Below are positions 6,701 to 64,000 of a DNA stretch of 64,000 nucleotides, piece by piece. Source of the DNA: Selaginella moellendorffii (taxonomy: Eukaryota; Plantae; Lycopodiophyta); the NCBI RefSeq assembly GCF_000143415.4, contig NW_003314274.1:2710623-2774622 (forward strand), in the 5' to 3' direction. A program made the position numbers and the translations under genes. Below the pieces are notes generated by a model, which ran no database searches, was not told where the DNA came from, and was given only the letters and a program-made list of their open reading frames with translations. Each line of letters starts with the position of its first letter. Position 1 is the first letter of the stretch.

Positions 6701-7556
6701 CCACAATAGAAGCAATGACCCACACTACCCGTTCCGCTAGGAGCAAGTTTTGCAGGTTGCTACTACTTGGACCCACTAGGAGGAGGAATAGAGGGCTTAG
6801 AACTAGAAGAAAAGAGGGCTTAGGACCAGAAAAAGCTACTGGTGGTCTCCAACCACCACCATCTTTGTTAACCATAGCTTGTGAGCCTCTAGGGCAGTAC
6901 CTGCCTTCCACCCTTTGTTTCCGGTCACCTTGCTTATTCCCAGAAATTTTATTCTTATCCGAGTTATCAACATACGGTTGCTAATATTGTTCCATGAGTG
7001 ATTGACTAAAGGCAACTTGTTGCGCTGCCTCCTTACACTCTAGGTACGTCTTTGGCTTAAACTTCAAAATCTCATTGTGAGAAAGTGAACTTAAACCCTC
7101 CAGAAAATAACTCCGAGCATCTTCAACACTCATATTTGGAATCATAATGCGCTTCTCAGCAAACTCATTAATGTAATGCATGAGGTCCCCTCGCTGCTTT
7201 AACCACTGCAGCTCTGTGCGAAGTCTTAGACCAAGATCATCAGGCAAGTATTCCTTATGGATATGAGACTGCATCTTGGTCCAACTTCTAGTCTACCCTT
7301 TTTCAGCACACACCTGGCGCCATTAGCACGGTTTCAACTTCATTAGCACGGTTCTGTTTCACCACCCCACTAACTGTATACATGCCTCTATCAGTAACTG
7401 AACATGCATACATCATTCTTACTGAATGGTGCAATCCAACTAATCCTACATATGTTGCTTTAGATCTACTAGAAAAGTCTCTGCGTATGCAACTTGAGTC
7501 AGAAAATCTGACAAAAGTTGGATAGAAATCACTAAGACAATTTCTCTGATACCAAA
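3749..7556 (-). pseudogene. Decayed Ty3/Gypsy gag-pol (gag with Zn knuckle, protease, RT, RNase H, integrase), related to the chromovirus at 13893-17679
   Basis: Fragments in Gypsy order: gag 6981-7274, CFYCGESG knuckle 6538-6723, protease IDMGTMHS 6194-6472, RT YINDVLVF 5056-5523, RNase H HCDAFGYAIG 4862-5092, integrase LDFVT..VVVDRLSK..ISDRDSRF 3744-4157. Many stops and frameshifts. PBS CTCTGATACCA at 7544-7554. Confidence 0.92.
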
Positions 7557-11400: not shown

Positions 11401-11981
11401 AAGAGAGCATTGTCCTTATGTATAAAATTGTCATTGTTTATACCAAACAAGGTAATATATATAGAACATTTCCCTCATAATCTGATGAGGGGAAGGAAGT
11501 TTGAAAAAAAAAAATTCACAATATTTAGAATGAGATTACAAAGCACTTACTCATGATATTCATGATTTTAACCTCGCTTCAGAACAAATTAAATCATTGT
11601 TCAATCAAGCTAAAGAAAAGTTTGAAAGAGAGAGAACTGAAAAACATATTAGGTACACATTAATGAAGAGATTAAAAATCCCAATATGACTTTGATGGTT
11701 ATCTAAAATACGTAAATCCATACGCTACTCCTCCTTGGCAGCATTAATACATAGAAAATGCCTCTGCTTTATTTTAATGTAGTGGAACACAAAACAACTA
11801 GATTGATTCCCCACAAAAGGAAAAAGTGCTAAATTTATAGCTCTTACTCTTTGATGGTGATTTAGGTTCCCCTACAAACGAAACACCTATTTTGCATATA
11901 CTAATTGCAAAATAGAGTATTTCTTATCAAATTATAATGAGCACAATGGCAATTGCAGAAATGGCATGGGATCTTGTAAAA
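8454..11981 (-). mobile_element. AT-rich 3' region of an ancient non-chromovirus Ty3/Gypsy element (continues at 17933)
   Basis: Joined to 17933+ by the TAAAA TSD of the insertion between them, and lies downstream of the integrase remnant at 17990-19500. No recognisable domain; ~115-bp tandem duplication at about 8839-9055. Extent uncertain. Confidence 0.45.
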
Positions 11982-12175
11982 TGTAAGCTCCTGAATTTGG
12001 ACTTCCCGGGAGGTCACCCAGCCCAGTACTATTCAAACCCAAGGACGCTTAACCCCAAGTATCCCAAGACCCTTAACCGATTGGAAAAGGGGGTGCACTC
12101 TTTTTTATGGGCCCTTTCCCTCTATATTTGAACCCCATGGATCGTCTCTCAAGTCGTTCCCTTTGGTTGCTTACA
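11982..12175 (-). mobile_element. 3' LTR, Cassandra-type (LTR B)
   Basis: TGTAAGC...GCTTACA inverted termini; contains the 5S-derived domain; preceded on the minus strand by PPT GGGAAGCGTGGTGGAT. Confidence 0.92.
11999..12053 (-). promoter_or_regulatory. 5S rRNA-derived domain (Pol III type-1 internal control region: A box, IE, C box) in the 3' LTR
   Basis: Minus strand GTTAAGCGTCCTTGGGTTTGAATAGTACTGGGCTGGGTGACCTCCCGGGAAGTCC aligns without gaps to the 3' half of plant 5S rRNA (GTTAAGCGTGCTTGGGCGAGAGTAGTACTAGGATGGGTGACCTCCTGGGAAGTCC, recalled consensus), 47/55 identical. The 5' half of 5S is absent. Confidence 0.93.
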
Positions 12176-12381
12176 ATCCACCACGCTTCCCTGCAAGTTC
12201 ACGCCCTCGTGAACGGAAGCTGAGAGCCGCAGCTCTCCCGAGAGCTCCGCTCTCTTGACACCCTACCCCTCGGGTCGAGCCCAGCGGGAACAAACTGGAC
12301 CAGCCAGATGTCAATCAACATGTGGTGTGATTCCCCTAGCCAACTAACAGAGTCGGACCCAAGACCGCTCCGATACCAAAT
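12176..12381 (-). mobile_element. Cassandra/TRIM non-coding internal domain (206 bp) with PBS and PPT
   Basis: TGGTATCGGAGC PBS (12378->12367); hairpins GAGAGC-gga-GCTCTC, GAGAGC-tgcg-GCTCTC and GTTCACG-aggg-CGTGAAC; purine-rich tract abutting LTR B. Confidence 0.85.
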
Positions 12382-13530
12382 TGTAAGCCACAAATTTTTC
12401 CTTTCCAATTTGCCAGCTTACCTCGTCTATCCGTCCAACACTGCCTTGGCTTTTGCTAAGTTCCCTTGCCAAGTTTTTCGCCTATGGTACCAGCTCCTAC
12501 TTGGTTTCAGCTACTCACTGCACGAGCAACGGAGTGTTAGCCATCCTTCCACGGATTCCCAAATCACTCTCAATCCCCCTCCCCGGGTTAGACTGGACTT
12601 AAGGTTCGGCTACACTCCCCGCAAGCACAAGCAGCCAAGCACACCAAGCTTCCAGGTTCCTAACATCCCTTGGTACCACAAGACTTGATCATGGGACCCT
12701 CTAAATCCCAAGTCTTGAGTGCAACACTTGCTTCGGGACGCCGGGGCGAAACACCGTGGCCTAGCGGCCCGGTATGGGTACCTCTTGCCCCCCACTTCCA
12801 TCCCGAAGGAAGGCCCAAGCCCCTAGGAAGGGTGAGGACCAATGAGCCGCATGGTACTCAAGTGGGGCACCACTCCACATGAGCCGGGAGCACCGCAATC
12901 GGTTTCCCTTTCGGGAGTGGGAGCTGCTCTTGAGCACTTCCTTGGATGGCCCCTCCGGCACCAGCCAAGTCCATGCTCACTCCCACCCAAGGCCCCTCGG
13001 TCCCAGTCCCAACCTCAAGTCGGTTTAGAAGCCCAACTGGAGAGTCCCTTCAAAAGTGGTTCCTAGACCTCACTATCCCTACTATACTTTTGGAACCCCC
13101 TGCAGCCCCCCCCCCCCCGGGAGACGCACGCTTTGGGCTTTCACCCCTTGACCCGTATTAGTATTTGGACTTAGTCTCTGGCTCGATCTCGGACCCGATT
13201 TCGGATCCGACTTTGGATTCGGGTTCGGACTCGATCACGGACTCGATCTCGGACCCGATCTCGGACCTGACCTCGGACTCGACCTCGGACTCGGTCTCAG
13301 ACCCGATTTCGGATCTCGGACTTCGTCTCGAACTCGGTCTCGAACTCGGACTTGAACTCGGTCCCTGAGTCGGTCTCGGACTCGATTCCGGACTCTATCT
13401 TGAACTCGGTCCTAGAGTCGGTCTTGGACTCGATCCTCGACTTGGTCCCATCCGATAAACTCCTTGTCATTTCGGTCAAGCTTTTGGGGATCCTTTAGCC
13501 TACGACATCTCGGGGAGTCGGTTCCTTACA
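12382..13530 (-). mobile_element. Internal LTR C (1149 bp), native LTR of the chromovirus
   Basis: TGTAAGGAAC...GGCTTACA termini. Preceded by a PPT and followed by a PBS rather than by a TSD. An independent solo copy lies at 37750-38843. Confidence 0.9.
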
Positions 13531-13810
13531 ACTCCACCACCCATAGAAGAAGTTCGATGCCCACATCGAACGTCTCGTTTTATCCTACGACTTGTTGACC
13601 ATGTCTCCGGGGGCATCCCCCCACTTACAACGGAATATAGGTGTCCCTATACTCCTCACCTCACCACGCCCTAGTATGGGGTCGGGACTTGAACCCAGCC
13701 TTGCTTTACTAGGGGGTTGGGACTCGAACCCAACCTCCGTAGAATACGTCTACGGATTCGACATCCCCGCGGGGAGTCGGGCGTAGTGCCCTACGCCTGG
13801 TCGACCTATC
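13531..13810 (-). other. Structured 3' UTR (hairpin array with two T-loop/B-box-like hairpins) plus PPT
   Basis: About eight consecutive stem-loops on the minus strand, e.g. GGTTGGG-TTCGAGT-CCCAACC (13735->13715), TCCGTAG-acgtatt-CTACGGA, GAGTATAGG-gaca-CCTATATTC and GTTCGATG-tggg-CATCGAAC; PPT ATGGGTGGTGGAGT. Confidence 0.75.
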
Positions 13811-13892
13811 CAACCCATGCTAATTAGCTTACCTTTGGCGCGCCTTCGGGTCCCAACATATTGCACTTGCTCAACTTTGCAAATTGATATTT

Positions 13893-16800
13893 TTAATTGA
13901 ATTTTGCATAAGTACATAGAGTTCTGCCTTGCAGAAATTCCTCCACTAGTTCTCGAGCGTTCACTAGGTTCTCCTCCGGTTCCCATGTTGCTTCGCAGTG
14001 TGGAAATCCTTTCCACTTCACATGGAACTCTCTCACCTCGCGTCCTTGTCGCTTGCTGCGGGGGGAGTCCCGTGATGAAGTCCATCGTAAGACATTTCCA
14101 CGGGCGATCTCGAATTGGGATGCTTTGCAACAAGCCCCCACTAGCCTTAGTCACGGCTTTTACCTGCTGACATGTTGGACATGTCTTTAGATAGTCTTGG
14201 ACGTCCTTAGCCATATCTGGCCAATGGTACTTCCTTTTGAGTAAGCCCATCGTCTTGGGCACTCCACCGTGTCCCGCAAGAGGTCCGTCATGACACTCTT
14301 CTAAGGCCACCTTCCTTAGTTCCCCTTCTGGAACATACACCCTCGTTTGCTTGTAATAAATGAGTCCGTTGCGTTCCGCATAGCCCGTTTTCTCTTCCGT
14401 TGGCAGCTCACCTCTCTGGTGAGCTTCCCGCGCCTCTAGATTCCTCAGCAACACTTCCTGTGCTAGACCATCGTTCTCATATGCTGTCCGCACATCGTCC
14501 CAGAAGGTTGCTGTTGCGCTGGATATTGCCAACTTCAAGCTCGCTTTTCGACTTAGCGCATCCGCCACGATGTTGCTCTTCCCAGGCTTGTACAGAATTT
14601 CACAATCAAACTCGGCCAAGGCATTGGCCCACCGACCTTGTTTCCCTCTTAGGTCGGGCTGTGACAAGAAGTGTTTCGTTGCCACATTGTCCGTGTAAAC
14701 CTTGAAGTGTCTCCCAAGGTAGTGTCGCCACTCCTTGAGTGCCTTGACCACCGCAAACAATTCCTTCTCGTGGGCAGGCCACTTCCGTTGAGCCTTGTCC
14801 AGCTTCTTCGAGAAGAACGCTACCGGATGGTTGTCTTGCTTCAGAACTGCACCCAATGCAAAGTCCGAAGCATCCGTTTCTACCTCAAAGTCCTTACCAA
14901 AGTCTGGTAATGCCAATACGGGAGCCTTCCTCAACTTCCCTTTGAGGTGGACGAATGCCGCCTCGCATTCTGCTGTCCATACCATCTTCCCTTTTCCTGT
15001 TTGGTCCGTTAAGGGCAGGGCTACTCTCGAATAGTGTTTGATAAACTTTTGATAGTAGTTGCATAGCCCCAGGAACGCCCTCAACTCATGTACATTCGAT
15101 GGTCACTCCCATTCCTAGATCGCTTGGACCTTATCCGGGTCCACCTTGAGCCCGTCCTGGCCCACCACATGCCCGAGAAACTTTACCTCTTGTTGAGCAA
15201 AGTCACATTTGCTCTCTTTAGCATACAGCTTGTGTTCCCTTAGTTTCTCAAACACCTTCGCCAAGTGTTCGGCATGCTCTTCTAGCGTCTCGCTATAGAT
15301 CAGGATGTCGTCGATATAGACGACCACGAAGTGATCCAGATAGGGTACAAAGACGTGGTTCATTAGTGCCGAAAACGTTGCCGGTGCATTACATAGCCCG
15401 AAGGGCATCACCAGAAACTCAAAGCTCCCATACCTCGTTCGACAGGTTGTCTTCTCGACATCTTCCTCGGCTACCCTGATCTGGTAGTATCCTGACCTTA
15501 GGTCAATCCTCGAGAAGTATTTTGCCTTTCCCAACCTATCGAACAGGTCCTCAATCCTTGGCAAAGGGTACTTGTTCTTCTTTGTATACTTGTTGAGCAA
15601 GCGGTAGTCTATGCACATGCGCATAGTTCCATCTTTCTTTTTCACAAATAACACCGGCGCCCCATACGGCGACTTGCTCAACCTAACATACCCTTTGTCC
15701 ACCAACTCCTCTAGTTGGCACTTGAGCTCCTTGAGTTCTTTTTCGTTCAAACGATAAGGGGAACGAACCACTGCCTCAGCACCCTCGACCAGCTCAATCT
15801 TATGTTCTATCGGTCGTGCTGGGGGCAGCCCCGCCGGTAGCTCCTCCGGCATGGTATCCTGGAATTGGTCCAACACCCGTTGGATCACTAAAGGTACTTC
15901 TTCCATTCCTGTCTTTCTGTCACTCTTCACCGAGAGTAAGCACAAAAAGGCCGCCTTAGTTCCCTTAGTGAGTTGTCCTCTCGTGGACACCAGGTTTAAG
16001 CAGGAATCTTTGGCCTTGCTTTGCCCTACCTTTAGATCTTGGGCCTCCACCCTAGATCTTCTTCCTTGGGCATTCGCTAGTACCACAAGGTTTCTACCTT
16101 GTCCATGCAGGGCTACCACGAATCGATTGAACCAGTCCATTCCGAAGATCACGTCAAATCCCGCCATGTCCAACACGGTGAAGTCCATGTCCACCTTCCA
16201 AGTCCCCACTTCGACTCTCGCTTGTCGAAGTACCTCATCGGTGCTTTGGCTACCTTGAACAAACTCTATAGTCCTTGGTTCGCCTAGCCGCTGCACCGTT
16301 AGTCCGGCTTGCCGGACTATGTCTGCAGCCACAAAATTATCTGAAGCACCCGTGTCAATAAGGATTTTAACAAAGCTACCTCCGAGCTTCCCTCGGAGGG
16401 CTAGTAGATGTCGCGAACGACTCTCTACCAAAGTTGCTCGTGTAATGAGTAACTTTGAGTTAGGGGCTGGATCACATACCTCTGTTTGGACTTCACCTGA
16501 CTTGATGGCCATATTGGCTCTGGCCTTCTTCGGGTAGGGACATTCCCTCGAGAAGTGTCCCGCTTCACCGCAGTTGTAGCATACGTTGTTTCCCACGCTG
16601 CTATATGACTTGACCTTCTTATTCGTGGGTTTGTCTCTTTTCACCTGACTCCCCCACGTACTCGCTCGCTGGCCACCGGATTTGCCTTTCCGGAACCCCG
16701 AGGACTCATTCTTAGAGAAACTCTTCTTGAATTTCCCTCTGCTAAACGTTCCCCTTGGTTTGGCCCCTTTGCTAAATGTGGATCCCGACCCCGTCGTGTT

Positions 16801-17679
16801 CCCCTTTCGCAGGTTATCGTTGAAATGCACCTTGATGGCCGCATCCAACGCTTCTTTGTAGTTGGTCGGGTTCCACCGCATTACTTCGCCGCGAGCCCCG
16901 GTTTGCAAACCTGATATGAAGGCATGGAACGCATCCATATCCCCCATGTCCGTGACAAGTATCCTCTTTGCCATAAACCCATTCACATACTCCTGAATGG
17001 TTCCGGTCTGTTTCAGCCTACTCAACTCGTCCCTTAGATGCAGAGTAGCATTCGGAGGAACGTAAGTTGCGCGGATCCTCGCCTTCATCATTTCCCAAGT
17101 GGCCACCGGTCCTTCGTTGGCCTCTGTCGTTCTCCACCAAGACTTGGCATTATCTGCCAAGTATGGTTTTGCACATGAGACCTTCTCCGAGCTTGGTAAT
17201 CGCAACGCTCGGAAGTAGTCCTCCATATTGTAGAACCAATCCTCCACCACCTTATAGTCGTTCACTCCCTTGAAGACCGGTGGGGGCTTTGGTTTGTACT
17301 TGGGAACTGCCTGAGGGACCGATTCCACTTCGGTCTGTTCGACCTTGTCTGGTTTTGCCTCAGTCCTTGCCGAAGGGTCCGCACCTTCTGCGCTGCCAGC
17401 ATCTACAGTCTTTCGCTTTTTCTTCCGCTTCTCGTCACGCTTTAGCTTGCGTACGAGAGTCTCTAGCAGGGCATTGGTCTGTGCCAATTGTCCTTCTAGA
17501 ACATCCAATCGAGCCTTGGACGACCGAACCTCACCACCAGACTCCTGTTTGGAAGTTGCTTCACTGGAGTCCTCCTCATGCAAGGATTCCTCATCCATCG
17601 CCTCCTGTTCGACCGGAGGCTCCAGCTCTGGAGGAGGTTCCGTCTCTGCCTGGGTTCGCTTACGTCCTGCCCTTGCCAT
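13893..17679 (-). pseudogene. Chromovirus (Ty3/Gypsy) single-frame gag-pol: gag, CCHC knuckle, aspartic protease, RT, RNase H, integrase HHCC, chromodomain; two nonsense codons and the integrase core deleted
   Basis: [14 protein letters not shown]; LIDTGAS; YIDDILIY; TDASDFALGAVL; CHDGPLAGH..CPTC. After MDFITGLP (about 14065) the sequence jumps to FHVKWKGFPHCEATWEPEENL (chromodomain, ORF 13893-14141). In-frame TAG at 15115-15117 and TGA at 15103-15105 join ORFs 15115-17679 and 13750-15084. Confidence 0.95.
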
Positions 17680-17738
17680 CTCCCAGCAATCCGCCTCTAT
17701 CCTTCGCTAGAACTGAGGAAGAGGCTCCGATACCAAAT

Positions 17739-17932
17739 TGTAAGCTCCTGAATTTGGACTTCCCGGGAGGTCACCCAGCCCAGTACTATTCAAACCCAAG
17801 GACGCTTAACCCCAAGTATCCCAAGACCCTTAACTAATTGGAAAAGGGGGTGCACTCTTTTTCATGGGCCCTTTCCCTCTATATTTGAACCCCATGGATC
17901 GTCTCTCAAGTCGTTCCCTTTGGTTGTTTACA
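17739..17932 (-). mobile_element. 5' LTR, Cassandra-type (LTR B)
   Basis: Near-identical to 11982-12175. Followed on the minus strand by ATT-TGGTATCGGAGC (PBS) and the gag ATG at 17679. Confidence 0.92.
17756..17810 (-). promoter_or_regulatory. 5S rRNA-derived domain in the 5' LTR
   Basis: Identical to 11999-12053. Confidence 0.93.
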
Positions 17933-20075
17933 TAAAATTAGCTTTCAAAATGGATGGAAAGGATATTAAAATCACTTAGGATCTTATTTCTAGGCTTTTA
18001 ATTGAAGAGTCAGTCTACCTTCCTGTGGTTTTACAAAGTCTGATGTAGTTTTATAAAAAATTTCAAGACCCCCATTCTTCATCCAATTGGCCACACTATT
18101 TGTGCACTCAAGTAATTCATCATGATGAATCCTTGCAAGGGCTTCATTCAAAAGCTTATCCATAGTTTTGTACCTTAAAATATAGACAATATTTATGCTT
18201 ATATCTTTATAGTACTTTGTTAAATGATTTAAATTTACTATTACAATATTGTCCCCATTTAAGGTATGCACTTTAGCCATTTCTTGAGCAGATATCTTAG
18301 ATAAAATAAATGGACCATTCCATTTTCTCTTGAATTTATTTTCAAGAGCATTTATTTTCCCTTGATATCAAAGAACGTTCTCTTGGCTTAAACTTGCAAG
18401 AGATTTTCAATTTTTTGTCATGCCTAACTTTTTTGGTTTTTTAAATTGCATATAGGGTCTAAATTGCTCTAACCTTAAACACATTTAAGTTTTCTATTTT
18501 AGCACATTTTTGCTTAAGAGCTTCTTTATTGTCTAAGCCATTTTTAATTACAATACAAAAAGAGGGAATTATAAATTCCATAGACCTTAAAGCTTCTTAG
18601 CCATAAGTAAAATAAAATGGTGTTATGCATATAAATACTTTATATGTAGTCCTATAAGCCTATAAAGCATCTAAGATTTTTCTTATCCCAGTCTTTTTTA
18701 TTGTCTTTTACAATCTTTTTCAAAATATTTGTAAACACTTTATTAGTAGATTCAGTATAAGCATTCCCTTGTAGGTAATATGGCATGGACATTTGGGCTA
18801 AAGGATAAATTTTTGTATTAAAATTTTTATTATTTCATTGATGAAATGGGTGCCTCTATCTATAACAATCTCTTTATGCAAACTAAATATTATAATGATG
18901 TTTTTATTGAGGAATTTGGTAGTGTTAACATCTGAGGCATGTTTCATAAGTAAAGCTTTTGTCCATTTAGTCACATAATTAGTGGCAACTAAAATATATT
19001 TGTTCCTCTTACTGCTTGTCACCACATGACTTACAAAATCCAATCCTCATTTAGGAAATACATCATATGAATAGGTAGGATTTAATTTATGGATTACCTT
19101 TTTATGCAATAATTTATGCTTTTGGCAAATGTCACAATTTTTGCCAAAAATTTCTTTATCTTTCTAAAGCATAGGTCACCATAACCCTATTTGTAAAACT
19201 TTTTTAGCAGTGATTTTGTCTGCAAAATAGCCTTCTGATGGACCTAAGTGAGATTTCTTTAGGATTTTATTTATTGTTTTTTGCCTATTAACACATCTCT
19301 TTAGTGTTCCATCAATGCTGAATTTATACAGGTATTGCCCTACGATAGAGTAATGTCATATCCTCAGGATAAACAACTTCTTTTTCTCTGGCAAGTTATA
19401 ATGGGGTGGAATGATGCCTATAGAAAAATAGATTTGTATATCTTTCAACCAAGTGGTAGGCAAAAAGATTGTAAATAAGTAAGCAACTGAGAATTCATGT
19501 ACCTTAGTATTAGGTGAATCTTCTATAGTGATGCTGTTTAGACAATCAACATATTCATGAAATTTTCTAGGTCTATATCCTATTTCAAGATTATAGTCAA
19601 GCAGATATACACAGTTTGTTGATGAGATATAAAAAGAACCTTATGGTCAGCAAAGACAATTACTTTTGTTACCAAAAGATAATGCCTAAATTTTTGTAAA
19701 ACATAAATTACAGTTAAAACTTCTTTTTCAGTCGTTGTTTAGTTATGCTCAGTAGAATTTAAGCATCTACTGGCATAGTACATAGGATGATCTTTTTGAT
19801 CACCTTGTGTCTAGGACAATATTGCACCTGTGGCAATATTACAAGTATCCACCTGTAAGTGAAACTCTTTTGTTTAGTTGAGCTTAACAAGTATAGATGC
19901 TTCTTTGAGGCATTATTTATTAAAAATGTTTGTTGACAATTTTTGTCTTATATAAATGGAGTAAGTGGCTTGATAGTACTAAAGCCTTTATATTTAGTAG
20001 TTAGAAACTTTTTCACATTTGCTAATTAAGCTGAAAAAAGTTGGAATCTTAAGTCTACTAAAAATGTTTTATTTA
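17933..20075 (-). pseudogene. Ancient non-chromovirus (Athila/Tat-like) pol remnant: RNase H and integrase
   Basis: DFVSHV..NKYILVATNYVTKWTKA..EIVIDRGTHFINE (18798-19043); RNase H-like EFHLQVDTCNIATGAIL..HPMYYASR near 19770-19870; heavily decayed and AT-rich. Confidence 0.8.
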
Positions 20076-37029: not shown

Positions 37030-38958
37030 GAGAAGGAGTTCGAGATGGAGTCCAAGGAGTCTGAGATAAAATTTGAGATGGACCCAAAATAGAGTTTGAG
37101 ATGGAGTCTTATATGGACTTGAGATAGACCCAAGATGGACTCTAGATGGAGTTTGTTATGGACTTGAGATAGACCTGAGATAGAGTTCGAAATGGATCTA
37201 AGATGGAGTTTGAGGTTGAGTTCAAGGGTGAAAGCCCAAAGCATTTGTCTCTTTGACCCTGGGGCATTTGGTGAGCTCTAAAAGTATAATAGGAGGTCTC
37301 TAGTGGAGCCAATTTGGTTAAGAAAGACTAGTTTGGACAAAAAAGGTTAATATGACCAAGGAAGGTTATACCCACATGGTGGGTGATGATATAACCATTG
37401 AGGAGTTCAAGGCTAGAATGAACATAGATAGACAAGTGGGATAACATAATGAAGTGTTCAAAAGCAAACTTTATCTCCCCTGAGAGATTGAATGGTCAAT
37501 ACTCTCAATCCATGTTTGGGTGGCTCTACCTACTTGTGTGTGGCTTGTTGGAACCAAAGGTGGAAGGTGGGGAGAGTACCCTCAAGGCTTGCATACAACT
37601 GTGGTGTTTCAAAATGCTATCCCAATGTCCTAGACTATGGAAAGGAAGAAAAGCAGTCCTTTTATGTAGTGACCAAAGATACAGTCATGCGGCAAGGAAG
37701 TCTTAAAGGTCAATGGGATATAGTGGTTGGGCCTTTCGGCCCAAACCCATGTAAGCCACAAATTTTTCCTTTCCAATTTGCCAGTTTACTTCGTTTATCC
37801 GACCGACACTGCCTTGGCTTTTGCTAAGTTCCCTCGCCAAGGTTCCCGCCTATTGTACCAGCTCCTACTTGGTTCTACTTGGTTTCAGCTACTCACTGCA
37901 CGAGCAATGGAGCATTAGCCATCCATCCACGGATTCTCAAATCTCTCCCAATCCCCCTCCCTGGGTTAGACTGGACTTAAGGTTTGGCTACACTCCCCGT
38001 AGGCACAAGCAGCCAAGCACACCAAGCCTCTAGGTTTCTGACATCCTTTGGTACAACAAGACTTGATCATGGGACCCTCTAAATCCCAAGTCTTGGGTGC
38101 AACACTTGCTTTGGGACACCAGGGCAAAACACCATGGCCTAACGGCCCGGTATGGGTACCTCTACCCCCCCAGTTCTATCCCGAAGGGAAGGCCCAAGCC
38201 CCTAGGAAGGGTGAAGACCAATGAGCCACAAGGTACTCAAGTGGGGCACCCCTCCACATGAGCTGGGAGCACTGCAGTCGGTTTCCCTTTCGAGAGTGGG
38301 AGCTGCTCTTGAGCACTTCCTTGGGTGGCCCCTTCGGCACCACCCGAGTCCATGCTCACTCCCACCCAAGGCCCCTCGGCCCTAGTCTCAACCTCAAGTT
38401 AGTTTGGAAGCACCACTGGAGAGTTCCTTCAAGACTGGTTCTTGGACCTCACTATCCCTACTATACTTTTGGAACCCTTTGCAGCCCCCCCCCCCCCCCC
38501 CCCTGGGAGACGCACGCTTTGGGCTTTCACCCCTTGACTTGTATTAGTACTCGGACTTAGTCTCGGACTCGATCTCGGACTTGATCTCGGACCCGACTTT
38601 AAACTCGGTCTCGGACTTAATCTTAGACTCGATCTCAGACCTGATCTCGGACTCAACTTTGGACTCGACCTTGGACTTGGTCTCGGACCCGATTCAGATC
38701 TCGGACTCTATCTCGAACTCGGTCTCAGAGTCAGTCTTGGACTCGATCTTCAACTCGGTCACATCTGATGAACTCTTTGTCATTTTGGTCATGCTTTTAG
38801 GGATCCTTTAGCTTACGACACCTCGGGGAGTTGGTTCCTTACAACTTAGTATTGGCGAACATGGCTATTGACAGAGAGGGGATTGGCAGGGACTAAACAA
38901 GGGCTGTTAGAGAAGGTTATTTCCTATGTCTTTGGGCAATTTAATGATGCTAAGGTGT
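37030..38958 (+). mobile_element. Degenerate family A LTR segment (continuation of 31613-31955), interrupted by solo LTR C
   Basis: Decayed GGAGTCCGAGAT array, GGGTGAAAGCCCAAAGC core; ends at ..GATGCTAAGGTGT. Confidence 0.8.
37750..38843 (-). mobile_element. Solo LTR C
   Basis: Colinear with 12382-13530 from TGTAAGCCAC to GGTTCCTTACA; flanks ACCCA and ACTTA (possible decayed TSD). Confidence 0.88.
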
Positions 38959-55474: not shown

Positions 55475-55769
55475 CTGTTCAGAAATGCACAACAATTAGA
55501 GCTGACAGATGAAAAGCTAGCAGCTGGAAATAACGTGAGTGTGAGACACAAAATCCCTAGGCCCCAAAGTGGAGCCGGAAGGGCGCCACATGGTAGTGGC
55601 CGAAGCGAGAGCCAAAAGAGCGTAACACGTTTGGACCAAAAGCTCCGACTTGAAAAGTCAAGAGCGGGAGTGGAACTCCCAACGAAGTGCTCGAGGAACG
55701 AGCACGAAGCGAGCAAAAGGCAAGGCTCCAAAAAGGGACCCAAAAGGACCAACACATGACACGTGGGAG

Positions 55770-56490
55770 TGTCCGAAATGGACTCGAGTTGGAGTCCGAA
55801 GTGGAGTCCGAGATGGACTCGAGTTGGAGTCCGAAGTGGAGTCCGAGATGGACTCGAGTTTGAGTCCGAAGTGGAGTCCGAGATGGACCCGAGTTGGAGT
55901 CCGAAGTGGAGTCCGAGGTGGACCCGAGATGGACCCGAGTTGGAGTCCGAAGTGGAGTCCGAGATGGAGTCCGAGATGGAGTCCGAGATGGAGTCCGAGG
56001 TGGACCCGAGATGGACCCGAGTTGGAGTCCGAAGTGGAGTCCGAGATGGACCCGAGATGGAGTCCGAGATGGGACCCGAGATGGAGTCCGAGGTGGACCC
56101 GAGATGGACCCGAGTTGGAGTCCGAAGTGGAGTCCGAGATGGACCCGAGATGGAGTCCGAGATGGAGTCCGAGGTGGACCCGAGATGGACCCGAAATGGA
56201 GTCCGAGATGGAGTCCGAGATGGACCCGAGATGGAGTCCGAGATGGAGTCCGAGATGGAGTCCGAGATGGACCCGAGATGGACCCGAGATGGAGTCCGAG
56301 ATGGAGTCCGAGATGGAGTCCGAGATGGAGTCCGAAGTCGAGACCGAGACCGAGAAGGGCCAGAGCCCCGAGATCGGGACCGAGACCGAGACCGAGGCCG
56401 AGGCCGAGACCGAGCCCGAGCCTGAGTCCGAGTCCGAATCCGAGTCCGAGTCCGAGTCCGAGTCCGAGTCCGAGTCCGAGTCCGAGTCCG
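55770..56490 (+). repeat. LTR-internal tandem array (GGAGTCCGAGAT / GGACCCGAGAT 11-12-mers, then GAGACC / GAGTCC hexamers)
   Basis: Directly visible; present in the family A LTR copies that retain this region, with a related array in LTR C. Confidence 0.95.
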
Positions 56491-59400
56491 GAGCCTGAGA
56501 GGGTGAAAGCCCAAAGCGTTCGTCTCCCAGACCCTGGGGGGTTTGGTGAGCCCCAAAAGTATAGTAGGGGGAGGACTGCAGTGGAGCCAGTTTGGCCAGG
56601 AAAGGCCAGTTTGGCCCAGGAAGGCCCGACCCAGTGTTGGGTGATGAGCTGCCCACTGGGAAGTCCAAGACTAGAGTGAACACAGACCGACAAGCGGGGT
56701 AGCTTGGTGAAGTGTTCAAGAGCCGGCTCTAGTTCCCCCGGGAGATCGACTGGCCGATGCTCCCAATCCAAGTGTGGGTGGCACTACCTACTTGGATACC
56801 TGGTGTGGCTCAACGGAACCCGCTCTAAGCCCATGGCTAGAGCACCCAAGGGTAGAAGGCGAGGAGAGTACCCAGGTGGCTCGCGTAAGGCCACGGTGTT
56901 CCGAAATGTTGTCCCAAAGGCCCAGACTGTGGAAAGGAAGAGGAGCAGTCCTCTGGGGTAGTGACCAAGGACACAGTCGTGTGGTGAGGAAGTCCTAGAG
57001 GACCGTGGGACTTAGTGGTCGGGCCTGTGGGTCTCGGTCCTGTGGCAGTGTTGGCAAACACGGCCAGGGGCAGAAAGGGACTTAGTGGGGACTGACAGAG
57101 GGATATTGGGGAAGGCTATTCCCCTTGTCGGTGGGCATCCTAAGGATGCTAAGGAGTGGATCTGAGATGACCACTCACGGATGGTTTGCCTAGTCTTGGG
57201 GAGCCAAGACTGTGATGCAAGTGGTATTGGACTACCAGTGTGGCAAAGGTGATTGGGCATGGCCTTAGCGTAACGGGCTGCTATGTCGGTGGTACCTTTG
57301 AGTGTCGGTCATGGGATCGGACACGTGGAGCACTTGGACCAAGTGCAAATGTTGAGTGGCATGGATGCCATTCTCGGGGCTAGCAAGTCCCAAGTCCTGG
57401 ATTGGACTTATGGAGGTTGTGAATGAGACTCCTCCAAGTGGTCGGAGGTGTGGTTAAGTGACTAAAGTAGAATGGAAAATTTAGTCGCTTACAATTTGGT
57501 ATCGGAGCTGTTCCTTAGTCCAACTTTTATTGGTGCTCAAGTATATCACCACTAGTGTTGGCATCGGAAGGTCTAAGGAGTGGGTCTATCCTTGAGGAGT
57601 AGCAAGTCGGGAAGACATGGCTCTCCATTATAGTTCATGTGTGAACTTGTAGACGAGGGTGGATAGAAAAGTGCCAATAATGGAACGACTTTGGGATCTT
57701 GGGAACAGTGCAAGGTTTTCCTCATTGAGTTGAGGATGTGATCCGGATGAGCATTTGTCTCAGCAAATTGGCTAAGGTTGTTGTGGTAAACAACCAAAGT
57801 TGGGATCACGGGAAAGATAGAGACTCCAAAACAATAAAGGAGTCACAAGATTATCCTCATATAGTTGAGGTTGGTGCTCATGAATGTGAGACCAAAGGTA
57901 ATGACCGTGGAAGGTCAAATACGGAAGAGGACTCAAGTCCTTGAAATGGTAGCCGGGGCTACCTCTAATAAATGCTGGAACAACCCAAGGAGTTGGGGGT
58001 GTATTGAGTGGATGAGTTGGTATTCTCATCACATGGACAAGTAGTCCTAAGGGGCAAAGGTTGCCCCCAGAGAACAAAATCAAGTGTCGGAGTAACACTT
58101 GTGAAAATAGTCCTTTTGAGTAGGACAGGAATGCAAGAAGTGTATTCCAGTGAGCTAGTGCCTCACAAGTAGGACCTTATGGGTCTGTGGATTAACCAAG
58201 TCCAAAATTGCTGGATGACTCAAGTAGAGTCAACGGATGGTCCTAAAAGGACTGATGGAAGCATTTGGACTGAGGTGTGTTGTACCCCACAAAGGATGGG
58301 GGGGGGGATCATAGGATCCAAGGATGAGAACAGAGGGTATCTCATCAATGGCAAAATAGGCCATGCTAAAGTTATGGGAAAGGTGTTCCCAGAAGAAAAC
58401 AACTCTGACATAAAGTTGTGTGTGACCTCTATGGTGCAGTGCTAACGGATGGTTGGCATGAGAAAGAGCGGTGTTGGTCTTGGCAAAGACTTAGACACGA
58501 AGGGGAAATGTCATAGAGGTAGGCTCGTGGAGCCGATGGTGTGGAGACACCAAATGTGCCAAGGTGTGATACCTTGAGGCTATGTTGGTGGGTTCATGAG
58601 AACCCCTTGCCAAAGGAATCCCAATGGAAATGGGAATAGCATAGCCTAAGCTGCAGAGCATGCAGTTGGAGTGTGGTGACCCAGATAATGATGGAAGTGT
58701 GAAAGCACCAAGCAATGAGTTGTAGGACTTGACAACTATGAGGCAACTAAGCAAGAGGTGCAAAATAACTGGTTAAACGGGTAGAAGGTAGCTACCCAAG
58801 ACTTCTTAATAGCATAAGGAAGTTGGATATACCCTTACGGGGGATAAGTTGCTTGTGTTGCGATATAGTAAGTCAATGTCATAAAAGGAAATACTCATTG
58901 TCAAGAAAGCCATCATTGGGACACCCGGACACTCTAGAACACCAGAAGGTGGTGTTTGATGTCGCGAGGGCAATGGATAAAGCCCAAGGGACTAAGTCCC
59001 TAGCGAATGATGGATAGAAGGTGCTATCCAAATGTCCAAGGTTGCGGAGACAGGAGAGGACTGTCTACCCGAATTGGACAAAGCCAAAAATGGAATTTTG
59101 GCAAGGCTAGTGATGGGCATGTAAAGGCCCATAAGCAACAATGTAATCCCAGTGTGTGGGATTATAAGGTGAGCATACCCGGATTGAGGAACCACTCCCT
59201 AGGCTATTGGGTAGGTCCATCCCTAAGAATACTTGCTAAAGCAGGACAGAAAGTGCAAAGCTATCCTCCTGGTCTGGAGGAGAATGACCGAAGGAAAGGT
59301 GTGAAGCCAAAAGCAAGTAGTATTGGGATGGAATTGAACCATAGAAATCAAAGGGCATATCCGACAGTGGTTATGAAAGTTGGGAGTGGAGAATCAAGAG

Positions 59401-59994
59401 GGTGCTCGAGGATGTTGTTGCTAGCAACCGTGATGCCATGGAGAGTCTAAAATATGGAATTGTCCATGTTAGACTATATGGCAATTATAAAGCTTGCGAA
59501 AGGGGAGGCCTTAGCAAGCTGAGGGACAGAGTTCCTTCAAGGTTCCCAAAGACGATTCTAGGTAGCGTAGTACCTAGAAAGGCCAAGTGTAAATGGTTCA
59601 TGGAAAGCGCGAAATCAGAGTGGTGCAGCAGAAGTGTGGTCTTGAAGCTTGCCATGAGGCAAGGTTATCAAGGTTAGGGAAGTAGTTCCCGAGTGTTCAA
59701 AGAGAGGGCTTTCAACGAAAGTCGATGGTCAAGGACTTTCACGCTTATGCAGGAACCATGTTACAATGGTCGGAGGACTTGCCAAGTGAGATTGGCACGT
59801 CGGGGGAACAAAGACCCTAGTTGAAGGTGATAACTTCAAAAAGGGTGGGCCATGGGGCCGAGCATGGAGGAGTCCATGCATGATCACAGACATGTCAAGT
59901 GAGAGGACTTGGCAGTGTGGAGGAACTAGGTTCCTAAGCTGTGATCTGTAGAGCGCTTTAAAAATAGGTTGGTGCACCGGCGTGGGGAGTCATG

Positions 59995-60390
59995 CCAGGC
60001 ATCTAGTGTGATGCCGTCCGTAGATGCATATACGGAGGTTGGGTTCGAGTCCCGACCCTCTAGTGCTTGGGTTCGAGTCCCAAATCACTAGGGCGTGGTG
60101 ATGGTTTGGAATATGAGGACACTCATATTTCGGTGGTCATGGACTCTCAGTGGGGAGACTGGTTTGGGCACACCGCCAAGCGAGGGATGCCTCGGAGTCG
60201 TGATGCACGGTTAGATTGCTTAGTGTGAAAGCTCAGCATATCTAACTTGAACACTTTGGTGCAAGTGGCACCAAGGTCGTGGTGAGTGAGATGGGGACAC
60301 CTAATCTCAGTTGCTATGAACCCTTGGCCGTAAGGGCTAGCTTGGGTGCACCGCCAAGTGTGGGGGATGCCCCCGGGGTTATAGTCAACA
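59995..60390 (+). other. Conserved hairpin array homologous to the chromovirus 3' UTR
   Basis: GGTTGGG-TTCGAGT-CCCGACC (60037-60057), CTAGTGCTTGGG-TTCGAGT-CCCAAATCACTAG (60060-60091), AATATGAG-gaca-CTCATATT; further copies at about 46780-47160 and 52570-52970. Confidence 0.75.
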
Positions 60391-61819
60391 ACTTGGAGGT
60401 CTAGAAGACCAAGTACCTCTTGGCAACTCTGTTAAGGTGCCAAGGTGAGATCACTAGGTGATCTTATGGCCAGATAAGGACAAGGTCCTTGGTTGGCTAA
60501 GGAATGAAATTCCTGGTTCAAAATGTTGAAATTGAACTGTTTAAGGTGGTGTGGCTTGGTCGTGATAACCAAGTGGGAAGAGCACCTAAGGGAAATAAAC
60601 TATGTCCGTGCGATGGCATAGTGAGTCCGAGGAAAGTAGTCTCTATAAAAGACCCATGGGAGGGTCACGAAGTTGGGCCGTGGATAGAGCCCATAGCAGA
60701 AGATGCTAAAGAGACGTACTAGGGGTGAACATCCTCCGGACTTGGCAAAGAAGAGTCTTTGCTATGGAACCGAAACAATACCTCAAGGAGGGAGGTAGAG
60801 ATTCGATGTTGCTTGGTGCAACAATCAACGGATAGGAGCAAAAGATGAATGGCCAAGATAGGGCCGTGGAATCCCTTGGAAGGAATCCAAGTGACAAAGT
60901 TAGGCGAGGAACACTAATGTGTTGGACGCTAACAAGTTGCGGGAAAGGAAGTGTGTTTCCAAGGAGGGATTCCGAATTGCTCCGATTTGGCAAAAGTGGA
61001 AGCTCCAAGGGAGGGAGCGGTAAGGTAGCCAAATGATAGGGCCATGAACAGCCCTAGCACAAAGTATGATAACTGGAACTTTGGCACGAAATAGAAGAGA
61101 GGATGATGGTGCCCTCAAGTAGAGAACTTCCTAGGATGGGAAGTGGAGTTGCACAAAAGGTGCAAGGCAAGGTGTCGGAGACACCTAGGAAATTGACTCC
61201 AAGAAGTCAAAATTCAAAGTTCCAAAGTGCAAAGGTTATATCGATGGAAATTGAGACTACTCGAGAAGGAGTAGTGGGTTTGATTTAGAGAAGGGTCTCT
61301 AAGAGGTTTAGCGAGAACTAAACCAATAAAAGGAGAGAACCAATCCTTGTGGTCCAATCAGTCTCTAAGTTGGGGAGACTACCCTCCTTAGAGGATAGGC
61401 AAGGCATGGTGAGCCTTTGGTGTCAAACCATTGAGGCATATGCAAAAGGCATGGTGAGCCTTCAATGTCAAACCATTGACAAATATTGGCTAGGTGCCAA
61501 GGATGGAAATGGTAACACATACGGGTGTTACTTTACAAAATGGTTTACCGTTCGATGAGGACATCAAACTTCGTCTATGGGTGGTGGAGTTGTGAGACAC
61601 AAAATCCCTAGGCCCCAAAGTGGAGCCGGAAGGGCGCCACATGGTAGTGGCCGAAGCGAGAGCCAAAAGAGCGTAACACGTTTGGACCAAAAGCTCCGAC
61701 TTGAAAAGTCAAGAGCGGGAGTGGAACTCCCAACGAAGTGCTCGAGGAACGAGCACGAAGCGAGCAAAAGGCAAGGCTCCAAAAAGGGACCCAAAAGGAC
61801 CAACACATGACACGTGGGA

Positions 61820-62525
61820 GTGTCCGAAATGGACTCGAGTTGGAGTCCGAAGTGGAGTCCGAGATGGACTCGAGTTGGAGTCCGAAGTGGAGTCCGAGAT
61901 GGACTCGAGTTTGAGTCCGAAGTGGAGTCCGAGATGGACCCGAGTTGGAGTCCGAAGTGGAGTCCGAGGTGGACCCGAGATGGACCCGAGTTGGAGTCCG
62001 AAGTGGAGTCCGAGATGGAGTCCGAGATGGAGTCCGAGATGGAGTCCGAGGTGGACCCGAGATGGACCCGAGTTGGAGTCCGAAGTGGAGTCCGAGATGG
62101 ACCCGAGATGGAGTCCGAGATGGAGTCCGAGATGGAGTCCGAGGTGGACCCGAGATGGACCCGAAATGGAGTCCGAGATGGAGTCCGAGATGGACCCGAG
62201 ATGGAGTCCGAGATGGAGTCCGAGATGGAGTCCGAGATGGAGCCCGAGATGGACCCGAGATGGAGTCCGAGATGGAGTCCGAGATGGAGTCCGAGATGGA
62301 CCCGAGATGGACCCAAGATGGAGTCCGAGATGGAGTCCGAGATGGAGTCCGAAGTCAAGACCGAGACCGGGACCGAGACCGAGACCGAGACCGAGATCGG
62401 GACTGAGACCGAGACCGAGGCCGAGGCCGAGGCCGAGACCGAGCCCGAGCCCGAGTCCGAGTCCGAATCCGAGTCCGAGTCCGAGTCTGAGTCCGAGTCC
62501 GAGTCCGAGTCCGAGTCCGAGTCCG
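61820..62525 (+). repeat. LTR-internal tandem array of the 3' LTR
   Basis: Same units as 55770-56490 with a different count and order. Confidence 0.95.
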
Positions 62526-64000
62526 GAGCCTGAGAGGGTGAAAGCCCAAAGCGTTCGTCTCCCAGACCCTGGGGGTTTTGGTGAGCCCCAAAAGTATAGT
62601 AGGGGGAGGACTGCAGTGGAGCCAGTTTGGCCAGGAAAGGCCAGTTTGGCCCAGGAAGGCCGGACCCAGTGTTGGGTGATGAGCTGCCCACTGGGAAGTC
62701 CAAGACTAGAGTGAACACAGACCGACAAGCGGGGTAGCTTGGTGAAGTGTTCAAGAGCCGGCTCTAGTTCCCCCGGGAGATCGACTGGCCGATGCTCCCA
62801 GTCCAAGTGTGGGTGGCACTACCTACTTGGATACCTGGTGTGGCTCAACGGAACCCGCTCTAAGCCCATGGCTAGAGCACCCAAGGGCAGAAGGCGAGGA
62901 GAGTACCCAGGTGGCTCGCGTAAGGCCACGGTGTTCCGAAATGTTGTCCCAAAGGCCCAGACTGTGGAAAGGAAGAGGAGCAGTCCTCTGGGGTAGTGAC
63001 CAAGGACACAGTCGTGTGGTGAGGAAGTCCCAGAGGACCGTGGGACTTAGTGGTCGGGCCTGTGGGTCTCGGTCCTGTGGCAGTGTTGGCAAACACGGCC
63101 AGGGGCAGAAAGGGACTTAGTGGGGACTGACAGAGGGATATTGGGGAAGGCTATTCCCCTTGTCGGTGGGCATCCTAAGGATGCTAAGCAGTGGATCTGA
63201 GATGACCACTCACGGATGGTTTGCCTAGTCTTGGGGAGCCAAGACTGTGATGCAAGTGGTATTGGACTACCAGTGTGGCAAAGGTGATTGGGCATGGCCT
63301 TAGCGTAACGGGCTGCTATGTCGGTGGTACCTTTGAGTGTTGGTCATGGGATCGGACACGTGGAGCACTTGGACCAAGTGCAAATGTTGAGTGGCATGGA
63401 TGCCATTCTCGGGGCTAGCAAGTCCCAAGTCCTGGATTGGACTTATGGAGGTTGTGAATGAGACTCCTCCAAGTGGTCGGAGGTGTGGTTAAGTGACTAA
63501 AGTAGAATGGAAAATTTAGTCGCTTACAGTGAGGCCACACGCCATTCACCACTGCATCAGATGTCTTGAGGTTGCATCCTAAGATGGCGTGAGGCTACAC
63601 GCCATCTGTAACCGGACTGCACTCGAGAGCCCAATCGGTGCATGCCAATGTTGCTACTGAATGGCATGTGGCCTCATGCCATTTTCTACTTGGCCTAAAA
63701 GACTTACCATTTGAAGCCGAATGGAGGCGTGACAATCGAGGCCGGACTCGCTGGCGAATGTGCACTGTGTGTGCAGCGGATCGTAGCAGCAAGGCTACTC
63801 TGCCACTTACAGTTGGAGAGTGGCGCTGAAATCTCCCAGGACGCCAAGTGGGCTGCGTGTGGGTGGCGGAGTTGGCGGCGAAGTTACACACTGGGTGTGT
63901 CTTGAAGTGGACGCCGATGCACACAAGCGCGATGCGAGTGCAAGTGTGATGCAAGCACGAGTGGACGCCGATGCACACGAGAAACCTGTAGAGAAGGTAG

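Follow-up and report, generated by a model that had tools for sequence, protein, structure and literature searches.

A three-LTR insertion in Selaginella moellendorffii joins Cassandra-type 5S LTRs to a chromovirus gag-pol and provides a lead toward the Cassandra helper

Within a window of 64,000 nucleotides of the lycophyte Selaginella moellendorffii (contig NW_003314274.1, positions 2,710,623 to 2,774,622), the minus-strand unit at 11982-17932 is a single insertion bounded by a perfect 5-bp target-site duplication (TSD). It comprises three LTRs from two families and two internal domains, arranged in the order LTR-B, primer-binding site (PBS), gag-pol, PPT, LTR-C, PBS, internal domain, PPT and LTR-B (Table 1). 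The outer LTRs (LTR-B) are of the Cassandra type, and LTR-C is the LTR of a chromovirus with a sister family, D, in the same window. The composite is a heterologous variant of the known template-switch “complex” insertions. With a probability of roughly one half, it originated by PBS strand transfer between co-packaged Cassandra and chromovirus RNAs, followed by one integration event. Template switching, co-packaging and hence the use of C/D chromovirus particles and enzymes by Cassandra are what we infer from a single copy, and judged from its sequence the composite is a lead, not proof, toward a Cassandra helper.

Cassandra elements are found across vascular plants and encode no protein. They are very short TRIMs (565-860 bp) without coding capacity, which are transcribed by Pol III from a 5S promoter, the transcript ending in the 3' LTR. 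Their autonomous partner is still called unknown in papers from 2020 and 2024 (PMC7215508, PMC10886601), in agreement with the original prediction for this stretch of DNA.

Table 1. Features of the composite insertion and of related elements in the window.
Feature	Position	Strand	Remark
Target-site duplication, 5' side (TTTTA)	17933..17937	-	identical to 11977-11981
5' LTR-B, Cassandra-type, 194 nt, TG...CA	17739..17932	-	190/194 identical to 3' copy
5S rRNA-derived domain, 5' LTR-B	17742..17829	-	Rfam RF00001
PBS 1, TGGTATCGGAGC, initiator-Met type with G variant	17724..17735	-	3 nt (ATT) past LTR-B
Chromovirus gag-pol, broken	13893..17679	-	interrupted by an in-frame stop and a large internal deletion
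Gag capsid domain (Retrotrans_gag)	16903..17163	-	Pfam PF03732, E 5e-13
CCHC zinc knuckle	16537..16587	-	Pfam PF00098, E 1e-7
Aspartic protease	16084..16377	-	Pfam PF08284, E 7.5e-15
Reverse transcriptase	15166..15645	-	Pfam PF00078, E 3e-39
RNase H	14608..14979	-	Pfam PF17919 and PF17917, E ~1e-32
Integrase zinc-binding domain (H2C2)	14155..14322	-	Pfam PF17921, E 6e-21
Chromodomain remnant, profile positions 11-51 of 53	13932..14054	-	Pfam PF00385 Chromo, E 4.3e-13
PPT-like tract of chromovirus, ATGGGTGGTGGAGT	13531..13544	-	immediately upstream of LTR-C
LTR-C, chromovirus LTR, 1,149 nt, TGTAAGG...GGCTTACA	12382..13530	-	second copy has same ends
12-nt tandem array within LTR-C	13156..13450	-	repeat detection
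PBS 2, identical to PBS 1	12367..12378	-	3 nt (ATT) past LTR-C
191-nt non-coding internal domain, read as Cassandra's	12176..12366	-	ends in PPT GCAGGGAAGCGTGGTGGAT
PPT GCAGGGAAGCGTGGTGGAT	12176-12194	-	abuts 3' LTR-B
3' LTR-B, Cassandra-type, 194 nt	11982..12175	-	4 differences from 5' copy
5S rRNA-derived domain, 3' LTR-B	11985..12072	-	Rfam 5S_rRNA
Target-site duplication, 3' side (TTTTA)	11977..11981	-	read directly
Second LTR-C copy, solitary	37750..38843	-	87-89% identical to middle LTR
Family D, complete non-coding (LARD-like) element	55540..63528	+	TSD GTGAG

The target duplication (TAAAA on the plus strand) has an estimated probability of ~0.002 to occur at random in the AT-rich flanks, and the outer direct repeats (11978-12175 versus 17735-17932) are 97% identical. 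The original prediction had named this duplication, outer LTRs matching at 190 of 194 positions and the minus-strand order of all parts, and each of these items was located; its second internal region of 206 bp corresponds to spacer, PBS and non-coding stretch taken together (12176-12381, 206 nt). Sabot and Schulman (2007) recognised template-switch complexes by one TSD and near-identical outer LTRs (PMC1950507). Like the composite, those complexes harbour three LTRs, two internal domains, one 5-bp TSD and near-identical outer LTRs, and an abnormal strand transfer between two RNAs was proposed as their origin, as it is here. The published examples (Angela-like, Squiq, Opie; PMC1950507) join two members of the same family via long LTR homology, whereas the composite unites a protein-less 5S TRIM with a chromovirus, its middle LTR is different and the common stretch amounts to 22 nt. 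Its two halves do not stem from one family, as LTR-B and LTR-C are related at their tips only, and one half is coding, the other non-coding. The composite extends template-switch complexes from within-family cases to a TRIM combined with a coding element.

A nested element would comprise two inner LTRs and a TSD of its own. The composite has a single middle LTR, which lies between a PPT and a PBS and lacks a TSD of its own; it is thus not nested, as had been anticipated. More elaborately, an element might have inserted at the LTR-B/PBS border and subsequently lost its 5' LTR by short-repeat recombination. Insertions within insertions and deletions are common in the window, yet this course of events demands one exact insertion base plus a deletion with exact ends, and the locus shows neither an inner TSD nor any trace of another LTR-C, which renders it very improbable.

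Each LTR-B contains a 5S-derived domain with boxA and boxC. Both copies match the Rfam 5S_rRNA model with 37.9 bits (E 3.4e-5), i.e., 0.1 bit under the gathering score of 38, and they are the only matches to this model in the window. The domain is internally shortened by ~32 nt and retains boxA and boxC at a spacing of 18 nt. This is the published Cassandra pattern (PMC7215508), and in the window it was found only in the LTR-B copies (2 mismatches, chance expectation 0), in the 5' LTR-B at 17769-17811. An initiator-Met PBS lies on the inner side of the 5' LTR and a PPT precedes the 3' LTR; the PBS, TGGTATCGGAGC, corresponds to the published Cassandra PBS, TGGTATCAGAGC, in a G-variant form. Two LTR-B copies and the 206-nt second internal region would add up to 594 bp, and the sole copy seen encloses gag-pol.

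The enclosed coding region follows the chromovirus domain order of gag, protease, reverse transcriptase (RT), RNase H and integrase, with a chromodomain (Pfam Chromo) at the integrase C-terminus. The predicted gag-pol with chromodomain is thus present, but it is broken by a stop and a deletion, and the chromodomain is a remnant. The deletion changes the frame and removes the integrase catalytic core together with the SH3-like domain; the integrase is represented by its zinc finger only. Because the integrase core is missing, the present copy is not itself a helper, and it can at most indicate a family but no functional helper. The absence of this core from the gag-pol copy also counts against a template switch. 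Instead of two LTRs of its own family, the chromovirus has LTR-C on the 3' side only and LTR-B on the 5' side. Its closest database relative (P0001) is aligned over residues 100-890 of 1188, and the alignment to gag-pol ends ~15 residues into the rve domain of P0001. In the protein search the best match of the 854-aa ORF reached only 42% identity, and hence a close relative is absent from that search; the N-terminal 200 aa of gag had no match there. Neither the 854-aa ORF nor the neighbouring 661-aa ORF had an exact match on record, a comparison of gag-pol with viral contigs found no relative, and the contig of the best protein match (L002, GCA_030012885.1) is too distant for a useful comparison.

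The chromovirus side is linked to other sequences of the window. The second copy of LTR-C is solitary: neither a PBS or PPT nor any piece of Cassandra adjoins it, and its flanks (TAAGT versus TGGGT) do not form a clean TSD. Family D has LTRs of 1,954 nt, which are 96.5% identical to each other and contain arrays related to the 12-nt array of LTR-C; parts of LTR-C share ~70% identity with the LTR of family D. The chromovirus PPT tract also precedes family D LTRs (61579-61593, 51399-51413, 49631-49645), and over a 48-nt stretch from the 3' internal end through the PPT to the LTR start, the C side and family D share 90% identity. The C side is therefore considered native, given this agreement of 3' internal end and PPT with the sister family and the occurrence of LTR-C elsewhere without any Cassandra part. 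A G-run inside LTR-C was rejected as PPT, since the second copy and family D set the LTR start 420 nt further up. The idea of gag-pol remnants within family D was likewise rejected.

Several cis-acting signals are common to the two sides of the composite. LTR-B and LTR-C agree at 12 of their first 14 nt and at all of their last 7 nt, their PPT cores are similar (GTGGTGGAT in B, GGTGGTGGAGT in C), and the G-variant PBS is common to B, C and one D copy. Family D has a PPT and a 22-nt block of U5 end, spacer and PBS identical to those of the composite. The LTR ends of two further gypsy families of the window are different, and the LTR tips of pear Cassandra differ from those of LTR-B (PMC4079214). 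An overall homology of LTR-B to LTR-C or LTR-D was rejected (z <2); that LTR-B and the chromovirus have no LTR body in common agrees with Kojima's prediction for Pol III TRIMs. Likewise, the idea that the D leaders hold a remnant of 5S was rejected, as the search of the window confined 5S to LTR-B. Beyond what the original prediction had drawn on, Cassandra thus resembles the C/D chromovirus lineage of the window in its LTR tips, its spacer, its PBS variant and its PPT, and probably in its internal domain, too.

The 191-nt internal domain has no blastn match within the window, and it is collinear with D-type leaders: its last 65 nt yield z ~11 with each of two leaders and z 3.5 with a third. 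Over its full length it aligns to four D-type leaders at ~60% identity with an invariant GGTGGAT, and this whole-length alignment raises the question of whether the domain is a native C/D-type leader. In that case, Cassandra LTRs would surround more than one unit of chromovirus sequence, derived from three templates. However, the leader match runs ~26 nt on into LTR-B, and in the 5' LTR-B these ~26 nt lie outermost, bordering host DNA. Moreover, the PPT of the domain abuts LTR-B in a TRIM-like manner, the leader behind PBS 1 differs and more events are required, so we judge a native leader to be quite improbable. The leader of gag-pol, 44 nt long and situated after PBS 1, does not resemble the leader of D and Cassandra, an observation that counts against a template switch.

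Both family switches of the composite lie inside a 22-nt block, made up of the U5 end (final 7 bases), the spacer ATT and the PBS (12 bases); the shared PBS had been predicted to be the switch site. The block is identical at both junctions (the PBS 2-side copy is at 12367-12388), and its flanks diverge immediately on either side. The U5-end/PBS block is the usual place of strand transfers. Two different RNAs in one particle could give rise to a three-LTR cDNA in a single round of reverse transcription, if the template jumped at the PBS via the 22 identical bases common to both families. Template 1 would be a Cassandra TRIM RNA, and template 2 the RNA of a C/D-lineage chromovirus, possibly without integrase core already. 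Cassandra-copied minus-strand DNA at the PBS would pair with the chromovirus PBS and continue through U5 and R of LTR-C; a normal R-mediated jump would then lead to the U3 of LTR-C, and PPT and gag-pol would be copied back to the chromovirus PBS. Finally, plus-strand strong-stop DNA from the Cassandra PPT would land on the chromovirus PBS, and the 5' Cassandra LTR would be completed. The product would have Cassandra tips on both ends, and integrase would insert it once, thus generating the 5-bp duplication.

A template switch is supported by the one TSD and matching outer LTRs, the middle LTR with PPT and PBS but no own TSD, the identical 22-nt block with diverging flanks at both junctions, and the native C side. 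Further support comes from the cis signals common to B and C (tips, PPT cores, G-variant PBS), the differing ends in the two other gypsy families and pear Cassandra, and the collinearity of the internal domain with D-type leaders. If co-packaging is true, the C/D chromovirus lineage would be the first candidate helper lineage for Cassandra. Free B-int-B or C-gagpol-C elements were not found in the 64-kb window, and the occurrence of one composite copy without free parental elements therein counts against a template switch.

The 22-mer is also present in family D, and a search of metagenome contigs gave one match, a distant chromovirus from another source (L001); accordingly, the 22-mer marks a clade rather than a single partner. 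Viral contigs searched with the 22-mer gave no match, nor did the Cassandra LTR-plus-PBS pattern in metagenome or viral contigs. A repeat that is common to at least three families in the window might have caused two false joins during assembly. Yet the contig passes through numerous repeats of 1-2 kb with 80-97% identity, suggesting that long reads or clones underlie it, and the false joins would need to create a perfect TSD-flanked unit by accident; we give an assembly artefact hardly any credence.

The 22-mer could equally guide recombination at the DNA level, and this counts against a template switch. In such a scenario, which the original prediction had itself listed as an alternative, a resident Cassandra made the TSD, and a one-LTR circle or cDNA of the chromovirus crossed over once in the 22-nt block. 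Because both junctions lie in the 22-mer, the product and its order of parts would be identical, and co-packaging would be dispensable. However, 22 bp are very short for a homologous crossover, while RT routinely transfers strands on a PBS of such length, and no intermediate was seen. The missing integrase core fits a cDNA unable to integrate alone, provided that the deletion predates the event, but the deletion may equally postdate the insertion. Integrase-independent entry of cDNA into existing elements is known in yeast (work cited in PMC11899658); it forms LTR-internal-LTR-internal-LTR arrays and keeps the TSD of the resident element. The yeast process involves long within-family homology and is not known from plants or for a 22-bp overlap. 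Overall, we regard DNA-level recombination as a rather unlikely source of the composite.

Multi-LTR Cassandra elements (3- to 5-LTR types in pear, PMC4079214; long arrays, PMC7215508) also have internal LTRs between PBS and PPT, and some have TSDs; unlike the composite, they are made of Cassandra only, with neither a coding region nor a foreign LTR. For the pairs OsajRetroS10/OsajLTRA10 (PMC4717578) and LTR-1_PTrit/Copia-9_PGr (PMC10886601), the partner was inferred from tips, PBS, PPT and internal similarity, as in the present case. Those pairs feature many copies and clear identity, whereas here the tips are short, the internal identity is ~60% and there is one chimera. The combination of a TSD-flanked chimera with both joins placed precisely in the common U5-end/PBS block, matching tips and PPT, and a related internal domain makes the question of the Cassandra partner concrete, and it can be checked by counts of junction types in one genome and by a comparison of tips across species.

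The composite might also belong to a propagating family, either a “coding Cassandra” or a chromovirus with adopted Cassandra LTRs, and the composite would then have arisen earlier by either route, with the locus as one daughter copy made from an RNA of the entire unit. Its outer LTRs match, and since LTRs, PBS and PPT are correctly placed, it is formally competent as a template. Family D, which is abundant in the window, has a Cassandra-like leader behind a chromovirus-type LTR, and this mixed make-up shows that such mixtures can spread. Against propagation, the 64 kb contain no second LTR-B unit, internal domain or gag-pol copy despite abundant C and D pieces, and copying would tend to resolve an internal LTR-C that has a PBS and a PPT of its own. 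Transcription is a further obstacle. The only T4 run in LTR-B is 13 nt upstream of the 5S start, and none occurs from the 5S start to PBS 1. The sense strand of the composite holds five T4+ runs, the first of them 1.5 kb past the start of the 5S domain. Pol III would thus be unable to transcribe the composite in full, and this speaks for a cDNA product that arose only once. We consider a propagating family unlikely.

Returning to the template switch, we tentatively suggest, at somewhat less than even odds, that Cassandra RNA is packaged and reverse-transcribed in C/D chromovirus particles, that the locus is a physical record of this process, and that family D is an older, amplified product of a reciprocal-type exchange. 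If family D is indeed related in this way, it suggests a route by which new non-autonomous families arise.

The composite, a three-LTR insertion on the minus strand with Cassandra-type outer LTRs and a chromovirus gag-pol, was located with the structure and coordinates of the original prediction, including its terminal repeats, the TTTTA duplication and the 5S domains. The direct repeats at 11978-12175 and 17735-17932 share 97% identity, and the two trimmed, 5S-carrying outer LTRs (LTR-B) differ at four positions, every one within the 5' half. At the rate commonly applied to rice, four differences in 194 nt correspond, very roughly, to 0.8 million years. Each LTR-B harbours an internally shortened, 5S-derived domain (Rfam 5S_rRNA, 37.9 bits, 0.1 bit under the gathering score, E 3.4e-5), and these are the only two 5S_rRNA matches within the window. 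Matches to the published Cassandra pattern boxA-18nt-boxC (PMC7215508), queried with two mismatches, are likewise confined to both LTR-B, with 0 expected by chance.

Features of the composite and of related sequences
Feature	Position	Strand	Details
LTR-B copies	11982-12175 and 17739-17932	-	194 nt each, trimmed to TG...CA
TTTTA at either end of the composite	17933-17937 and 11977-11981	-	
First PBS		-	TGGTATCGGAGC, 3 bases past 5' LTR-B
Chromovirus PPT-like tract	13531-13544	-	ATGGGTGGTGGAGT
LTR-C (middle chromovirus LTR)	12382-13530	-	1,149 nt, start TGTAAGG, end GGCTTACA
12-nt tandem array within LTR-C	13156-13450	-	
PPT ending the 191-nt non-coding domain		-	GCAGGGAAGCGTGGTGGAT, then 3' LTR-B
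Second LTR-C copy	37750-38843		87-89% identity, ends alike
Complete family D element	55540-63528		TSD GTGAG; 1,954-nt LTRs, 96.5% identity
D leaders aligning over the whole 191-nt domain	57494-57690; 42992-43190 (+); 375-150 (-); 31612-31385 (-)		
22-nt block in metagenome contig Ga0228711_1018676	1783-1804		

A 44-nt leader, which is unlike the leader of family D (a non-coding, LARD-like sister family of the chromovirus side), separates the first PBS from a coding region whose two open reading frames measure 854 and 444 aa. These comprise gag, zinc knuckle, protease, RT, RNase H and integrase zinc finger domains, and a chromodomain remnant lies on an additional open piece (Pfam Chromo, E 4.3e-13). 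The gag-pol is broken at two places, by one in-frame stop and by one large internal deletion with a frame change; the alignment to its best database relative ends approximately 15 residues inside the relative's own rve domain. Since the deletion took the integrase catalytic core along with the SH3-like domain, and Pfam found no rve domain in the composite gag-pol, this copy could not supply integrase.

Downstream of LTR-C follow ATT, a PBS identical to the first (12367-12378), 191 non-coding bases read as the internal domain of Cassandra, and the 3' LTR-B. The identity predicted for the two PBS extends to an entire 22-nt block, composed of the last 7 U5 bases (GCTTACA), the ATT spacer and the 12-base PBS, which is equal behind LTR-B and LTR-C. 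As sequence divergence begins immediately at both sides of this block, both exchanges between the families lie inside it. The claim that the structure is not nested also holds: a single LTR-C is flanked by a PPT on one side and a PBS on the other, and an inner TSD is absent, which excludes a nested insertion for the structure as it stands.

Strand transfer at the PBS between Cassandra and chromovirus templates in one particle would yield the order B-PBS-gagpol-PPT-C-PBS-int-PPT-B, where int denotes the 191-nt domain. In one path, a minus-strand switch at the PBS would come first, then the usual R-mediated jump along the chromovirus RNA, and finally a plus-strand transfer starting from the Cassandra PPT; the path originally proposed would involve two intermolecular plus-strand transfers. 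By either path the cDNA would bear Cassandra tips and integrate once, which fits the lone TSD and the near-identical outer LTRs, the criteria used by Sabot and Schulman (PMC1950507). An identical product would result from a crossover of a free cDNA or a one-LTR circle with a resident Cassandra inside the 22-nt block, and this one copy, from one window, fits either origin. We rate the crossover lower, because 22 bp are short for a DNA crossover, yet normal for PBS-mediated transfer. An integrase-independent cDNA route of such kind is known in yeast (cited in PMC11899658). A propagating “coding Cassandra”, copied as a unit, is mildly disfavoured, since five T4+ runs on the composite sense strand, the nearest of them 1.5 kb away from the 5S start, argue against whole-unit copying by Pol III. 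TSD-flanked complexes of three LTRs have precedents inside single families (PMC1950507), and multi-LTR Cassandras have been described (PMC4079214, PMC7215508). No report of a Cassandra-chromovirus composite was found in the literature searched, and Kalendar et al. (2020) refer to “(unknown) autonomous retrotransposon partners” of Cassandra (PMC7215508).

LTR-C is an independent LTR family, since its second copy has the same ends and stands there without an adjoining PBS, PPT or Cassandra part. Family D, which is abundant and accounts for much of the window, has related but longer LTRs (1,954 nt). The 48 nt spanning the internal end of gag-pol, the PPT-like tract and the start of LTR-C are 90% identical to the equivalent family D site, and the stretch right behind the composite chromodomain has matches in D-type interiors as well, from which it follows that the gag-pol/PPT/LTR-C side is native. 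The flanks of the second LTR-C copy, TAAGT and TGGGT, match at 3 of 5 bases and are two transitions apart, and this copy either represents a solo LTR whose TSD has decayed or arose by inter-element recombination. A D-LTR-related fragment adjoins it at 37206-37741. Both LTR-C copies contain a homopolymer G-run that is easily mistaken for a PPT (13 nt at 13100-13112; 17 nt at 38482-38498), and the 77-nt stretch surrounding it is found again in other LTR families (32515-32590, 39478-39554).

Going beyond the original prediction, we find that Cassandra and the chromovirus lineage share cis signals. Overall relatedness between LTR-B and LTR-C was not found (z below 2 against shuffles); their tips match at 12 of the first 14 nt (TGTAAGCAACCAAA versus TGTAAGGAACCAAC) and at all of the last 7, the PPT cores of the two parts are similar, and a G-variant PBS is common to B, C and one D copy. 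Other gypsy LTRs in the window, from two families, end in GCGCTAAA and GCGCTACA, and the tips of pear Cassandra are different again (PMC4079214); the composite's Cassandra tips thus follow the chromovirus lineage found locally. Over their first 160-185 nt, four D-type leaders align collinearly with the 191-nt domain (approximately 60% identity, GGTGGAT invariant). Against shuffles, the domain's last 65 nt including the PPT reach z 11-12 with two leaders and 3.5 with a third, its first part z 0.5-4.5, and the match extends about 26 nt into LTR-B, an extension that is weak when taken alone. Shared tips and internal domain with unrelated LTR bodies fit Kojima's Pol III TRIM prediction (PMC10886601). 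The 22-nt block, with the usual A-variant PBS, is also present in a metagenome contig carrying a chromovirus with only 34% protein identity (gag-PR-RT), and is thus the mark of a clade, not of one family. This element possesses a Chromo domain, and its 5' LTR ends in GCTTACA, followed by the ATT spacer and an initiator-Met PBS; the U5-end/spacer/PBS arrangement is thus conserved across a chromovirus clade.

The LTRs of the complete family D element abound in 12- and 23-nt tandem arrays, and its interior of 4.1 kb contains ORFs of at most 147 aa, without gag-pol similarity; no gag-pol remnant was found in family D. The region behind a chromodomain at 46113-46205 shows a match to the D 3' interior. 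From the leader and 3'-interior matches, D appears to be a non-coding derivative in which a Cassandra-like 5' leader is combined with a 3' end and LTR of chromovirus type. A reciprocal chimera (chromovirus LTR-PBS-Cassandra interior) may have been its ancestor, or the Cassandra interior may come from D's lineage. In the D leaders, a PPT-like GGTGGAT stands ahead of sequence that matches the initial 26 nt of LTR-B. The D-type copy at 41630-44459 is another rearranged or complex structure located at a PBS: the 3' 550 nt of the LTR and the PBS start are repeated 1,209 nt downstream (42443-42996 versus 43652-44204, 97% identity), followed by a jump to the late D interior.

A further chromovirus at 45426-46205 (+), with an integrase SH3-like domain and a chromodomain-like stretch, is followed by about 1.6 kb of non-coding sequence with 84-87% identity to the family D 3' interior and is the probable coding relative of D. 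Another Ty3/gypsy element (4050-7555, minus strand), whose RT shares 57% protein identity with that of the composite, has the PBS TGGTATCAGAG at 7544-7555 behind an LTR ending in GCGCTAAA, and a short leader motif, TCCAACTTTT, common to D leaders. Finally, a Ser/Pro/Thr-rich, ATG-started ORF of 661 aa at 23459-25444 (minus strand), for which no Pfam family was found and which an exact look-up did not find on record, is probably TE-associated.
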